Positions 9,645 through 45,568 of a stretch of 64,000 bases of DNA are shown piece after piece. The position numbers and the translations under genes were made by a program. The stretch is from the sequence record NC_047880.1. One strand, given 5' to 3'. Within the stretch, counting starts at the first letter, position 1; the number at the start of each line of letters is the position of its first letter. The notes beneath the pieces are model-generated. The model was not told where the DNA came from. It saw nothing but the letters and a program-made list of their open reading frames with translations, and made no database searches.

Positions 9645-9703
9645 AACTCTGCATATAATAGGCTAAAATAGCGCTAGATTTGAGGTGCTGAATATGATAT
9701 ACT
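9645..9703 (+). promoter_or_regulatory. boxed sigma70-type promoter, copy 1
   Basis: AACTCTGCATATAATAGGCTAAAATAG, 23 nt, then TG-A-TATACT. Confidence 0.8.
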
Positions 9704-9750
9704 GAATGCGAGCAATAACGCTCAATACACTGATTGCCAAGGGGCATACA

Positions 9751-10789: not shown

Positions 10790-10813
10790 TACTAATTGCC
10801 AAGGGGCATACTG

Positions 10814-41928: not shown

Positions 41929-42052
41929 TACATGCGGTTTGCCTGACGTGCCTCACACTCAACCACGCATTTGCGGGTGGCATAGTCGGGCTCTTTTTGA
42001 AATGTGTTTGTTTGACGCGCATTACATAAAGATAAACCAACAGGAGGCTGTT

Positions 42053-42391
42053 ATGAACAGATTTACCGCAGTATCGAAAGACGCACAAATCGTTTTGCTG
42101 AGTTGCGCTCTCGCAGGCACGCTGAACATTCTAGGCAGAGAACATCAAGACGGCGGAAAGCAGGTATTCGAATTCACCCTTGCTAAAATTGGCCTCGCAC
42201 CAGACGAGTTCAAATTCATTCTTGATCAAATGTCGTCTGATGTGGAAGAAGAAGTCAGATCTGTTACTGGTCTGCCTGACGAAGACGAAGACACCGCGTC
42301 TGATTTAGACACTATGGAAGACAGCCCAAACAAAGGCGAATATGATACAAGCCGCATGAACAAAGATGGCTGGGAAGATTTAGACCGCTAA
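42053..42391 (+). CDS. hypothetical acidic protein
   Basis: SD in hairpin AACAG-GAGG-CTGTT, ATG at 42053. Confidence 0.8.
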   Translation: MNRFTAVSKDAQIVLLSCALAGTLNILGREHQDGGKQVFEFTLAKIGLAPDEFKFILDQMSSDVEEEVRSVTGLPDEDEDTASDLDTMEDSPNKGEYDTSRMNKDGWEDLDR

Positions 42392-42395
42392 TGTG

Positions 42396-42454
42396 AAGTC
42401 TGCATAAAACAGGCTAAAATAGAGGTTGAGACATATATCAACACCTGTTATACT
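42396..42454 (+). promoter_or_regulatory. boxed promoter copy driving a non-coding segment
   Basis: AAGTCTGCATAAAACAGGCTAAAATAG, 23 nt, then TG-T-TATACT; TTGAGA -35. Confidence 0.85.
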
Positions 42455-42460
42455 TATTAG

Positions 42461-42600
42461 ACAGCGAGACATATGTGTTGCTGAGTTCGATTGATAGCTT
42501 TTAGCTGTATGTGAACTTTTCCCCCGCATACAGCTCTTTTTAAAGTGACTTGATTGAGGTTGCTTTAAAAAAGACCAGCTATTTGATGTATGCAAAAAGT
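42461..42600 (+). ncRNA. candidate structured small RNA
   Basis: ORF-free ~140 nt between two promoters; 5' hairpin plus a three-way junction (helices 42494-99/42577-82, 42503-11/42527-35, 42536-49/42559-73). Confidence 0.5.
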
Positions 42601-42643
42601 TGGACGAAATAGCGGTTGTGCAAAATGCTCTGCCTGCTATACT
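42601..42643 (+). promoter_or_regulatory. boxed promoter, variant copy
   Basis: TGGACGAAATAG, 22 nt, then TG-C-TATACT; TTGTGC -35. Confidence 0.75.
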
Positions 42644-42708: not shown

Positions 42709-44247
42709 ATGGCTATCGAAACTAACACAAATCTGGTTGGCAAAACTATCGTTCTGTTGGACGGCACTAAAACTAAAATCACTGATGCAATCGCGTCTGG
42801 TTATAAAGTGAAAAGCCGCACAGCCCGCGTATCAACTCGTTGTGTAGTTAAAGACGGCGCTCACTTCCGTGAAATCGAGCGCATGAACATGAGCCAGTTA
42901 GAAGATACAGGCGAAGGTTACGTGAAAGTGAAAGACGCGAAAGCGACCAAGTCTGCTAAAACCGCGAAAGCTGAAAAGCCAGCTAAGACCGCGAAGACAA
43001 CCAAAGCAGATAAGAAACCTGCTAAGCCGTCTAAGAAAGACGAACCTGCTCCGAAAGTTCGCAGCAAGAAAGAAAAAGAAGCGAAGCAACAAGAAGATTA
43101 CTTGAGCCTCGCAACTGCGATCATTAAAGGCGGCAAGAAAGTTGCGCCTGTCGAAATCGAAGCAACCGACGCTGAACTGACAGACGCGATTGCAAAACGT
43201 CTGGTCGATGTTCTCGAAAATACCGAAATCGCCCGTGTAGCTGCTGACAACAAAACGCCGATCGCAAACGCAATCGCAATCACGTACGGCGCTGAGTTCG
43301 CCGAAGAAGCTAACGTGCTTCAAATCACGCTGAACCTGCAATACGCTAAGCCTGTAGTATCAGCGCCTGAGCCTGAGCTGGATGAAGCTGTTGCTCGTCG
43401 TGCTGCTAAACTCGCCGCTAAGAAAGTGGGCAAAGTGCTGGCGAAAGCGATCAAAACTGCATTCGACCTCGAAGATGCAAACGACCTGCTGCCTGGTACC
43501 GTGTTGCTCAAAGCAGAAGAAGAGTTTATCTTCTGCGGCGAAAGCGCGAAACATGCAGGCAAAGCGCTGCTGTACAAAACAGCCGACGATAAGTTTGCGT
43601 CTGTCGCTGCTGATGCTCTGACTGAATACGAAATTGTTCAGGAAGAAGCTGAGGCCGAAGAAGAGGAAGAGGAAGAGGAAGCTGATGAAGACCTCGATGA
43701 CTCTGACGCTTATTCATACATCGCCGTTGATAAAGACCAGCTCGCACTCGTTAACAAGAAAGTGACTGCTAAGTATCACGCTGCAACCGCTGAACGTTTC
43801 GGCGTTAGCGAAGAAGCTCTGGTCCCTGGCCTTGTCGTTACAGACGGCGACACAACGTTTGCTTATCTGGGCTTCGATAGCAAAGGCGGTATGCTCGTCA
43901 TTGACAATGAAGCCGAAGATCAAGATGTTCTGTGCTACTCAAAAGCAGACATTAAATCTCTGGTAGACTTCTCGCCAGTAGTTGGCGAAGCGGACGAAGC
44001 TGATTCTGACGACGAAGAAGACCTCGACGACGAAGAAGAAGCTGCTGATGACGAAGAGGAAGAGGAAGCAGACGACGAAGAAGAAGCTGATGATGACTTC
44101 GACTTCGGCTCTGATATCCCGTCAGAAGATCTTGAAGACCTGACCGCTGATGAACTGCGTGACCGTGTTGTTCACTTAGGTCTGTCTACCCAGAAGAAAG
44201 CAGATCGCATGGACGAAGACGAACTCCGCGCACTGCTGACTGAATAA
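42709..44247 (+). CDS. multi-domain protein with a K/A/P-rich linker and poly-D/E tracts
   Basis: SD hairpin AATACT-GAGG-AGTATT; 512 aa. Confidence 0.9.
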   Translation: MAIETNTNLVGKTIVLLDGTKTKITDAIASGYKVKSRTARVSTRCVVKDGAHFREIERMNMSQLEDTGEGYVKVKDAKATKSAKTAKAEKPAKTAKTTKADKKPAKPSKKDEPAPKVRSKKEKEAKQQEDYLSLATAIIKGGKKVAPVEIEATDAELTDAIAKRLVDVLENTEIARVAADNKTPIANAIAITYGAEFAEEANVLQITLNLQYAKPVVSAPEPELDEAVARRAAKLAAKKVGKVLAKAIKTAFDLEDANDLLPGTVLLKAEEEFIFCGESAKHAGKALLYKTADDKFASVAADALTEYEIVQEEAEAEEEEEEEEADEDLDDSDAYSYIAVDKDQLALVNKKVTAKYHAATAERFGVSEEALVPGLVVTDGDTTFAYLGFDSKGGMLVIDNEAEDQDVLCYSKADIKSLVDFSPVVGEADEADSDDEEDLDDEEEAADDEEEEEADDEEEADDDFDFGSDIPSEDLEDLTADELRDRVVHLGLSTQKKADRMDEDELRALLTE

Positions 44248-44332: not shown

Positions 44333-45568
44333 ATGTCAACTTCAAACAAAATGTTATTGAACGCCCGTGTACGTCGTCTTGATGGTACTGTTACTCACAT
44401 CAACAAGATCAACACTAACGGTTATAGCACTGATGCCAAGGGGCCTCAGATACCTGTTAAGCGTCTCGTTCTTGCAGGCAAATCTTTGAAAGAGATTGAA
44501 GCGCCGTTCGCAAAAGACGAGTGCATCATCTCACAAGGCGTTACAGTCAAACTGAACAAACGCCAGCAACGTGAACTCGCAGATAAAACGCTTGATGAAA
44601 AAGCGTTGCGTCCTGACTTCGGTAGCTTGGTGTTTATCGACCCTGACACAGGCAAAGCGACTGACGGCAAGAAAGTGAAAGTGAAAGCTGGTGCGAAAGA
44701 AAGTCTGAAAGAAACGCGCAAGCATAACAAAGAGCCGAAAGTTAAGAAAGCAGAGAAAGTTTCTGCCAAGAACGATCTGAAAGATTCACTCGACCTGATT
44801 GACGAACGTAAGGCGCCTAAGTCTGCGCTCGTTGAAATGCTCACTGCTACACTCGAAGGCGATACGACGAAAGAACAGCGTAAGCAATTCGCTGATGCGT
44901 TTGGTATCGACTGGAAAGCTGCTAAGAAGCTCGGCGGCAAGGGTATCGTTAAGCAACTCGGACGTAAAGCTGCGCAAGCTGCTGCTGACAAGCTGAATGC
45001 TACTGTGACCTCTGATGCGTTCATTAAGCAGATGCCTCCTGAGTTGAAGCGTCTGATGCGTGAAGGTTCGCTGACCCTGAACAAAACACAGATTGAGCGT
45101 GTACTGTCTGCGCTTGGTCTTGATACGAAGTTCTATGCTATCGCAATGCAGAACTTCCTGGGTAATCTGACACTGGCTATCAAGCCTGAAGAAGTGAAGA
45201 CTACGCAGAAGAAAAAGAAAGCTGCACGTCCGCAGTATGCGACTGATAAAGACGCGAAGCGCCGTGTAAAGAAGATGACAATAAAGCTGTTGGCGCCTGA
45301 TGCGAAAGGTATGAAGACTGCTAAGGCTCACCTGAAACAGGCGAAAGCAATCTTAGCCTCTAAGCTGGGTATCGCTACAAAAGATATTAAACGCGGTCTG
45401 ATTGTGTATCACAAGAACGGCGTTGATTACATGTTCGTGGCCTGTGATGTACGCGGTCCGATCTTCATCGACAAAGATGGTGACCCGGCAGTGTATACTT
45501 ACGCGAACCTGCAAGACACGTTCGACTTCACACTGACGCCAACCTCTGAGCTGGACGCCGCTGTATGA
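44333..45568 (+). CDS. Lys-rich protein, probable paralog of the 42709 protein
   Basis: SD hairpin TGATT-GAGG-AATCA; N- and C-terminal segments resemble those of the 42709 protein. Confidence 0.88.
   Translation: MSTSNKMLLNARVRRLDGTVTHINKINTNGYSTDAKGPQIPVKRLVLAGKSLKEIEAPFAKDECIISQGVTVKLNKRQQRELADKTLDEKALRPDFGSLVFIDPDTGKATDGKKVKVKAGAKESLKETRKHNKEPKVKKAEKVSAKNDLKDSLDLIDERKAPKSALVEMLTATLEGDTTKEQRKQFADAFGIDWKAAKKLGGKGIVKQLGRKAAQAAADKLNATVTSDAFIKQMPPELKRLMREGSLTLNKTQIERVLSALGLDTKFYAIAMQNFLGNLTLAIKPEEVKTTQKKKKAARPQYATDKDAKRRVKKMTIKLLAPDAKGMKTAKAHLKQAKAILASKLGIATKDIKRGLIVYHKNGVDYMFVACDVRGPIFIDKDGDPAVYTYANLQDTFDFTLTPTSELDAAV

Follow-up and report, generated by a model that had tools for sequence, protein, structure and literature searches.

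A conserved, structured and non-coding early unit of Erwinia phage vB_EamM_Y3, apparently kept after loss of the gene that it preceded

What does an early promoter produce when no gene lies behind it? The question arises in the 317-nt gap between Y3_314 (end at 42391) and Y3_315 (ATG at 42709), which carries no annotation in Erwinia phage vB_EamM_Y3 (KY984068, Sasquatchvirus, 261,365 bp). The stretch of DNA analysed here, called the window, has 64,000 nt and corresponds with 100% identity to the last 64 kb of this genome; positions are those of the window, in which 41900 equals 239265 in Y3 numbering. A preliminary description of the sequence had proposed that 42461-42600 is a promoter-driven, ORF-free small RNA of about 140 nt with several helices. 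For the PaBG/Lu11-like "hairy" jumbo phages that infect Erwinia and Dickeya, almost nothing is known, to our knowledge, about how transcription is controlled or which non-coding RNAs are made. Biocontrol of fire blight is being considered with several of them.

The description of the segment as promoter-driven and ORF-free agreed with our scans, which found the listed features at their positions and no ORF of at least 30 aa on the + strand of 42461-42600. On the minus strand, an ORF of 71 aa runs across the locus (42380-42595). Compared with pEp_SNUABM_52, which is 98.7% identical, the Y3 gap has a +2 and a -1 indel, so that any ORF spanning the region on either strand would be frameshifted; small-ORF readings, including the 71-aa minus-strand ORF, were rejected on this ground. 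These two nearly identical genomes, with 3 differences in 317 nt, make up the Sasquatchvirus sample. A -1 frameshift site at UUUAAAG was dropped since no ORF crosses it, and a replication origin or primer RNA was dropped since the locus has no GC-skew inflection.

Transcription of the segment is predicted to start from a boxed early promoter, P1 (42401-42454, + strand), composed of an upstream box TGCATAAAAC-AGGCTAAAAT (42401-42420), the -35 element TTGAGA (42426-42431), a 17-nt spacer with TG and the -10 element TATACT (42449-42454). The boxed promoter claimed upstream of the RNA is thus present; it scored 10/12 in a consensus scan with the extended -10 TG and is conserved in relatives. From the promoter geometry, the transcription start would be the A at 42461, 7 nt past the -10 element. 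A second boxed early promoter, P2 (42591-42643, + strand), lies in tandem with P1 at a distance of 190 nt and corresponds to the next promoter expected at 42601, its beginning being at about 42591/42601; it leads to Y3_315 via a leader of ~60 nt with its own small 5' hairpin. The PaBG/Lu11-like group has its own sigma factors and no RNA polymerase of its own (PMC7412058), so early promoters of the sigma-70 type are expected.

The promoter class was described by the pattern TGCAWAWA, a AGGCTAAAAT-like box, a -35 element, a 16-18-nt spacer and TAYACT/TATAAT, and P1 matches every box of it. As a regular expression, this pattern detected 5 copies in the window, each of them on the + strand. When the whole 261-kb genome was searched more loosely with the box alone, 6 copies appeared on the + strand, all within 207-253 kb (the last 55 kb), and 0 copies on the - strand. 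The six promoters lie at window positions 9650, 15069, 27809, 42401, 42591 and 55357 (genome 207015-252722, + strand). Within ~50-70 nt downstream of P2, and likewise of each of the four other boxed promoters, there is a gene preceded by a small 5' hairpin and a ribosome-binding site; P1 is the only one of the six without a gene behind it.

Two minor features of these promoters were recorded. Most boxed-promoter transcripts (e.g. at 9660, 15069 and P2) would begin with a small hairpin whose loop is AAUAA or AAUAG. The repeat GAGACATAT noted at 42428 and 42466 is real: GAGACA stands beside the -35 element (42428-42436) and again at +6 (42466-42474), as a direct repeat in Y3. Several Alexandraviruses have the repeat in inverted form (TGTCTC...GAGACA, e.g. 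L002:1478-1525), and pEa_SNUABM_32, 17 and 1 lack the copy near the -35 element. The repeat may serve as an operator, or may simply coincide with the -35 sequence.

The 140 nt of 42461-42600 folded at -43.7 kcal/mol (z = -5.58), and 0/200 shuffles were as stable. Multi-hairpin folding, first proposed by eye, was reproduced by RNAfold, and the 5' hairpin, H1 and H2 were each stable beyond chance. The 5' hairpin (CAGCGA/TTGCTG, 42462-42483, + strand, z = -4.4) is followed by a 19-nt linker predicted to be single-stranded (42484-42502, + strand, including 42494-42499) and then by H1 (42503-42535, + strand, -14.7 kcal/mol, z = -6.0). The stem of H1 is formed by AGCTGTATG/CATACAGCT at 42503-42511/42527-42535 (11 bp in RNAfold) and encloses a pyrimidine-rich loop of 11 nt, AACUUUUCCCC. 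After one C, H1 is adjoined by a U5 tract (42537-42541, + strand) with AAAG next. H2 (42536-42573, + strand, -13.5 kcal/mol, z = -4.9) is an A/U-rich hairpin of 15 bp, at the base of which the U-tract CUUUUUAAAG is paired with the downstream CUUUAAAAAAG.

The three-way junction that had been drawn around these hairpins was not supported as a conserved structure. Its closing helix would join ATAGCT and AGCTAT (42494-42499/42577-42582, + strand), and when the two flanks were shuffled with H1 and H2 kept, at least 6 flank-to-flank pairs formed in 61% of shuffles and 61% folded at least as well, which is chance level. The 3' strand (42577-42582) has its homologue in the sequence that precedes P2 in phB78 and AD1, and copy 2 of Snuvirus is closed by a different, non-homologous pairing. 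A three-way-junction RNA was therefore rejected, its closing helix having no support beyond chance and its 3' strand belonging to the conserved sequence before P2.

Syntenic gaps were compared in 17 phages of five genera. With the Y3 gap in blastn, only the RNA region aligned in Alexandravirus, at 74% over 123 nt (window 42449-42571); the proteins encoded upstream of the RNA in Y3 and Alexandravirus have 41% identity. Early promoter, 5' hairpin, linker, GC-rich H1, C(C)UUUUU and H2 occur in this order in all compared gaps, and in all of them H2 base pairs the U-tract with a downstream A-rich run. The RNA element is present in at least five related genera, and the H1-U5-H2 design recurs at several early-region junctions, again in at least five genera. 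RNAalifold predicted the 5' hairpin, H1, H2 and a further hairpin, H3, from the 17 sequences, with at least one double change in 16/31 pairs. Pairs were counted per helix in 13 full leaders, described below: 95.6% of cells were paired in H1, with compensatory changes in 5/9 pairs, 87% in H2, with 1 compensatory pair (A-U to C-G), and 88% in a fourth hairpin, H4, with 5 compensatory pairs. An additional C-G/G-C flip in H2 separates phB78 from pEa_SNUABM_13 (S13). The structure of the whole leader beat 500/500 column shuffles and all slid controls. Conserved pairing was thus found in the relatives, the compensatory changes being clear in H1.

The 5' end is conserved as well. The sequence AGACAGCGAGACA is identical in Y3 and 10/11 Alexandravirus genomes, and the first 13 nt, ACAGCGAGACA, are nearly invariant between genera. 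Alexandravirus has the same 5' arm of the 5' hairpin with a different 3' arm (UCUCUCUG), so that the hairpin is kept by a non-homologous partner. A covariance model of H1+H2 found exactly one copy in the 261-kb Y3 genome (76.5 bits).

The preliminary description had recognised no family, and the Infernal/Rfam check gave no match either. Rfam 15 at gathering thresholds gave 0 matches in the whole window; at the locus, E <= 10 returned only chance-level miRNA/snoRNA matches, and at the homologous sites of 9 relatives nothing appeared at E <= 5. No Rfam match to C4 or to a riboswitch was obtained for the RNA. A riboswitch was rejected, as the 5' part has only ~40 nt and no Rfam match, and a CsrA sponge was rejected because the Y3 RNA has no GGA motifs. 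A CRISPR-repeat mimic, suggested by a resemblance of only 8 nt, was dropped. The unit is a real, conserved, structured, non-coding early unit that is new to Rfam.

What the unit belongs to was seen in the relatives. In Alexandravirus, Snuvirus, Rivsvirus and Yoloswagvirus the module is followed by the T-loop hairpin H3, then by H4, a ribosome-binding site and an early gene of ~190-273 aa, named here the 316 family for pEaSNUABM35_00316. The leader of this gene has ~200 nt, and in 13 relatives the module makes up its 5' part. The preliminary description had allowed that the segment might be only a read-through leader of the downstream gene, and this stands in part: a homologous element fronts the downstream gene's leader in four sister genera, so the element is not a free-standing sRNA family by origin. 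Its ancestral job would, on the same ground, be cis control of the transcription or mRNA of that gene. In Y3, the 316-family gene and the distal leader were found nowhere in the genome by tblastn and blastn. Two Alexandraviruses, phB78 and pEa_SNUABM_30 (S30), have independently lost the 316-family gene and have the same layout as Y3, namely P1, RNA, P2 and a Y3_315 homologue. Snuvirus and Yoloswag carry the leader copy plus a second, gene-less promoter-RNA unit exactly at the Y3 position. Sequence comparison thus identifies the Y3 element as what appears to be a promoter with three hairpins kept after loss of the 316-family gene.

The distal leader of the 316-family gene is absent from the window and is itself highly conserved in pEa_SNUABM_35 (L002:1627-1711) and 12 other relatives; it has no Rfam match. 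The H4 loop GCGGUUU can pair over 7 bp with AAACCGC next to the ribosome-binding site, this pairing being invariant with 100% of cells paired, and the complementarity could represent a translational operator of the pseudoknot type. One Yoloswag leader contains three H1-U5-H2 elements in a row. The annotated 65-aa CDS YOLOSWAG_310 (L019:1423-1620) lies wholly over the third of these elements, H3 and H4, overlaps the start of gene 311, and is probably not a real gene.

The same leader bears on a further identity. In pEa_SNUABM_13, ARAGORN and GenBank call a 95-nt tRNA-Glu(UUC) at 241695-241789 (L006:2445-2539), at the homologous site, and this "tRNA-Glu" is the H1-H2-H3 part of the 316-family leader. 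If the RNA were tRNA-like or a degenerate tRNA, its D, anticodon and T arms would correspond to H1, H2 and H3, respectively, and its acceptor stem to the closing helix. The likeness lies in H3, which in relatives comes right after H2 and has a 5-bp stem, a canonical UUCGAUA/UUCAAUA T-loop and 2 compensatory changes. However, the Rfam tRNA model RF00005 had no match at 9 loci even at E <= 5, and ARAGORN found no tRNA or tmRNA in the window or in five other relatives. The acceptor-like helix had 57% of cells paired and 0 compensatory changes, and its 3' strand is the 5' strand of H4; H1 (9-12 bp) and H2 (~15 bp) are far longer than tRNA arms; H3 is lacking in Y3 and has decayed in both phB78 and S30. 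The tRNA family was accordingly rejected as a reading that is hardly credible. The GenBank tRNA-Glu annotation in pEa_SNUABM_13 is probably wrong, and the analysis corrects it.

H1 and the U5 tract resemble an intrinsic terminator. In a terminator scan that allowed long loops and included the next base after H1 in the score, H1 reached -15.6 kcal/mol and was followed by C + U5, which is comparable with the values of -13.4 to -15.5 kcal/mol for the window's clean terminators (5576, 12789 and 35553). H1-U5 combines a stable GC-containing hairpin with an adjoining U-rich tract; its loop of 11 nt and its tract of five U fall outside the 3-8 nt and 7-9 nt of the intrinsic-terminator test. A consensus scan restricted to loops of 3-8 nt missed H1, the 11-nt loop being long for an intrinsic terminator. 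In the 17 aligned homologues, 4/5 columns of U5 are invariant and the fifth varies by a 1-nt shortening in AD1 only, whereas the A-rich partner of the U-tract varies (AAAAAG vs GCGAAAG); a near-invariant U-tract with a variable partner is more easily explained by a terminator tail than by a plain duplex. The probable role of H1 + U5, as modelled from these features, is therefore that of an intrinsic terminator or attenuator hairpin. It would place the 3' end near 42541, so the predicted RNA has ~80 nt and not the ~140 nt first proposed.

The following hairpin sets the element apart. No hairpin pairing with the U-tract follows the canonical terminators of the window, which makes the H1-U5-H2 design special; a generic terminator type was rejected because of this lack of H2-like followers and because the covariance model had no second copy in 261 kb. 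A looser element of the same design lies ~500 nt upstream in the Y3_313/314 gap (41936-42034, + strand), in which a long GC-rich hairpin (-24.9 kcal/mol) precedes CUUUUU and a further hairpin pairing with the U-tract. The same arrangement is present in the 314/315 gap of pEa_SNUABM_35 (S35; L002:949-1095). No promoter was found between the 41936-42034 element and gene 314, and none of its own was seen for the 316-family gene in relatives, so that termination at these elements would be leaky, as in an attenuator, or absent.

Taken together, the best explanation, to which we give about an even chance, is that the Y3 element represents the front half, now orphaned, of a structured early leader, whose leaky H1-U5 terminator yields an RNA of ~80 nt and lets some transcription read through over P2 into Y3_315. 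P1, a promoter of host sigma-70 type, would fire at ~42461 into the 5' hairpin, the 19-nt linker and H1. H1-U5 would act as a partial intrinsic terminator (attenuator), at which many P1 transcripts would end near 42541, leaving an RNA of ~80 nt with a protective hairpin at both ends. Read-through polymerases would transcribe H2, by which the U-tract would be locked into a 15-bp hairpin, and would run on across P2 into Y3_315. The firing of P1, the termination at H1-U5 and the later fate or role of the RNA are steps that we infer from this model. H2 is conserved yet lies outside a terminated RNA, and this counts against the best explanation.

Instead of partial termination, the hairpins may possibly serve RNA processing or stability. 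The element would then be an intercistronic device in which H1 and H2 act without termination, with RNase III cleavage in H2 or RNase E cleavage nearby, and in which H1 and H2 are the 3' and 5' protective hairpins of the neighbouring mRNAs, like the early RNase III sites of T7. The conservation of H2, although beyond the U-tract, would be accounted for, and so would the three elements in a row in one Yoloswag leader; transcription must also pass through the elements of the same design that have no following promoter, as in the Y3 313/314 and S35 314/315 gaps. On the other hand, H2 with only ~15 bp is short for RNase III, the invariant U5 with its variable A-tract is better explained by a terminator than by a plain duplex, and the analysis identified no nuclease. 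We regard this reading as quite unlikely.

Whether the orphaned unit is still functional was assessed from the divergence of gene-less copies. Between phB78 and S30, 1 position differs in the ~150 nt that run from the start site through H2, whereas 10-13% of third codon positions differ in the flanking genes and the H3 remnant, of no use once its gene was lost, carries 3 changes over 13 nt. Between Snuvirus S13 and S7, the gene-less P1'-RNA-P2 unit has 2 changes in 287 nt (one in the -35 element and one in the H2 loop), while 5.5-7.8% of third positions differ. In Y3, where the flanks are too divergent for blastn to align, P1 and the three hairpins are still intact. Because the gene-less copies are near-invariant while flanking genes diverge, the orphan unit is probably still functional, and the comparison speaks for P1, the 5' hairpin, H1 and H2 being under purifying selection in the absence of the gene as well. 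Constraint was measured in the phB78/S30 and Snuvirus pairs, the Y3 lineage itself, with its two Sasquatchvirus genomes, being too narrow. The region is mosaic (gene 302/309 is 42% divergent), so recent recombination could partly explain the low divergence of the gene-less copies.

These comparisons also weigh on a neutral origin, according to which the locus is a scar of cassette shuffling left when recombination between promoter and stem-loop units deleted the 316-family gene. The gene content between P1 and P2 is indeed 0, 1 or 3 genes among relatives, the deletion junction in phB78 and Y3 lies within conserved sequence upstream of P2, and the PeSL cassettes of T4-like phages behave in this manner (PMC4122927, PMC2839356). 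A neutral scar should, however, not be far less diverged than neutral sites in gene-less lineages while the H3 remnant decays, nor should P1 and the three hairpins of Y3 have stayed intact beside flanks too diverged to align; in addition, H1 may still serve as the terminator of the upstream operon, which would make the scar partly functional. A neutral scar is therefore decidedly improbable.

The persistence of the gene-less unit may be explained by an RNA that acts by itself. A free-standing, trans-acting sRNA of ~80-140 nt would be made immediately after infection, and its 5' end ACAGCGAGACA or its H1 loop would pair with host or phage mRNAs, or it would titrate an RNA-binding protein. It is consistent with this that one of six boxed early promoters is spent on the RNA, that the 5' 13 nt are nearly invariant between genera, that the predicted terminated form has the usual build of an sRNA (5' region, terminator hairpin and U tail), and that gene-less copies persist under constraint in four lineages. 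The search for targets, however, gave no complementarity beyond chance in the 64-kb window, where the best matches had 11-13 nt, lay inside coding regions and were about as many as expected by chance. In the sRNA seed test, the conserved 5' 13 nt were themselves inside a hairpin, and their matches in the window were at chance level and within coding regions. Pairing of the H1 loop with the AAGGGG ribosome-binding sites, as suggested in the preliminary description, was unremarkable (-9.2 kcal/mol, ~25th percentile of random windows) and had the wrong polarity, since UUUUCCCC pairs with GGGGAAAA and not with AAGGGG. Snuvirus copy 1, Rivsvirus and Yoloswag do not share the sequence of the H1 loop, and most relatives have the element as a leader instead of a separate gene. 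We consider a trans-acting sRNA unlikely.

A broader reading takes the locus as an immediate-early ncRNA gene of a new family that is kept for itself, either as a terminated ~80-nt RNA that would act in trans on the host in the first minutes of infection, or as a so far undescribed H1-U5-H2 device that would set the amount of passing transcription and the stabilisation or processing of the read-through RNA; this is a possibility on the doubtful side. An RNA that acts by itself would join the few immediate-early sRNAs known from virulent phages, whereas a mere attenuator would still define the punctuation of the early gene cluster. No transcript data for these phages were found in the literature.

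Several known systems share parts of the design on which the orphaned-leader explanation is built. The pR'-tR' "6S RNA" unit of lambda, like similar leaders terminated close to their promoter, consists of a constitutive or early promoter followed within ~80-200 nt by an intrinsic terminator, ahead of the genes that it serves; its default product is a short non-coding RNA, and gene expression requires read-through. The Y3 element likewise has an early promoter with a promoter-proximal predicted terminator. It differs in that no antiterminator protein or qut/nut-like site was identified for it, the gene served is gone, a second promoter follows, and the U-tract of the terminator is paired by the next hairpin. 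Small RNAs derived from leaders include the riboswitch-derived SreA/SreB of Listeria and the leader-processed C4 RNA of phages P1/P7. As in these cases, a structured RNA at the front of a leader can outlive the downstream message or act apart from it; in contrast to them, no ligand-binding domain, target or processing site was found for the Y3 RNA. The PeSL units of T4-like phages are repeats of an early promoter and a terminator-like stem-loop, with gene insertions and deletions between them (PMC2839356, PMC4122927). The Y3 locus resembles them in its early promoter and stem-loop, its variable early region and the differing gene content between P1 and P2. Unlike PeSLs, which occur as many short units per genome, Y3 has six promoters and a unique H1+H2 element, and its hairpins are long, covarying, kept without a gene and without sequence similarity to PeSLs.

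The locus thus defines an early promoter class with six copies in the genome and yields a new conserved structured RNA element with covariation across genera. It also provides a natural experiment, as loss of the downstream gene on at least two occasions left the promoter and two hairpins in place.

Some further observations were made around the locus. Pfam and PHROGs gave no function for the genes flanking the RNA or for the 316 family. Y3_315 (42709-44247), Y3_316 (44333-45568) and the 316-family proteins (L006:2601-3422) have a common build, with a short conserved N-terminal domain, lysine-rich and very acidic low-complexity stretches, and a C-terminal tail resembling helix-extension-helix; their sole Pfam match was a weak one to Ish1. 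A metagenome search for Y3_315 relatives gave no confirmed locus. The ribosome-binding regions at 9727-9747 and 10790-10810 have the 17-nt string AUUGCCAAGGGGCAUAC in common, which may be a repeated translational signal or a product of duplication. In IMG/VR, the 25.6-kb contig UViG_3300045789_000617, which looks unrelated, contains a 43-bit match to the H1-U5-H2 model (L025:1567-1625), so this design may also occur outside the Erwinia/Dickeya jumbo phages.
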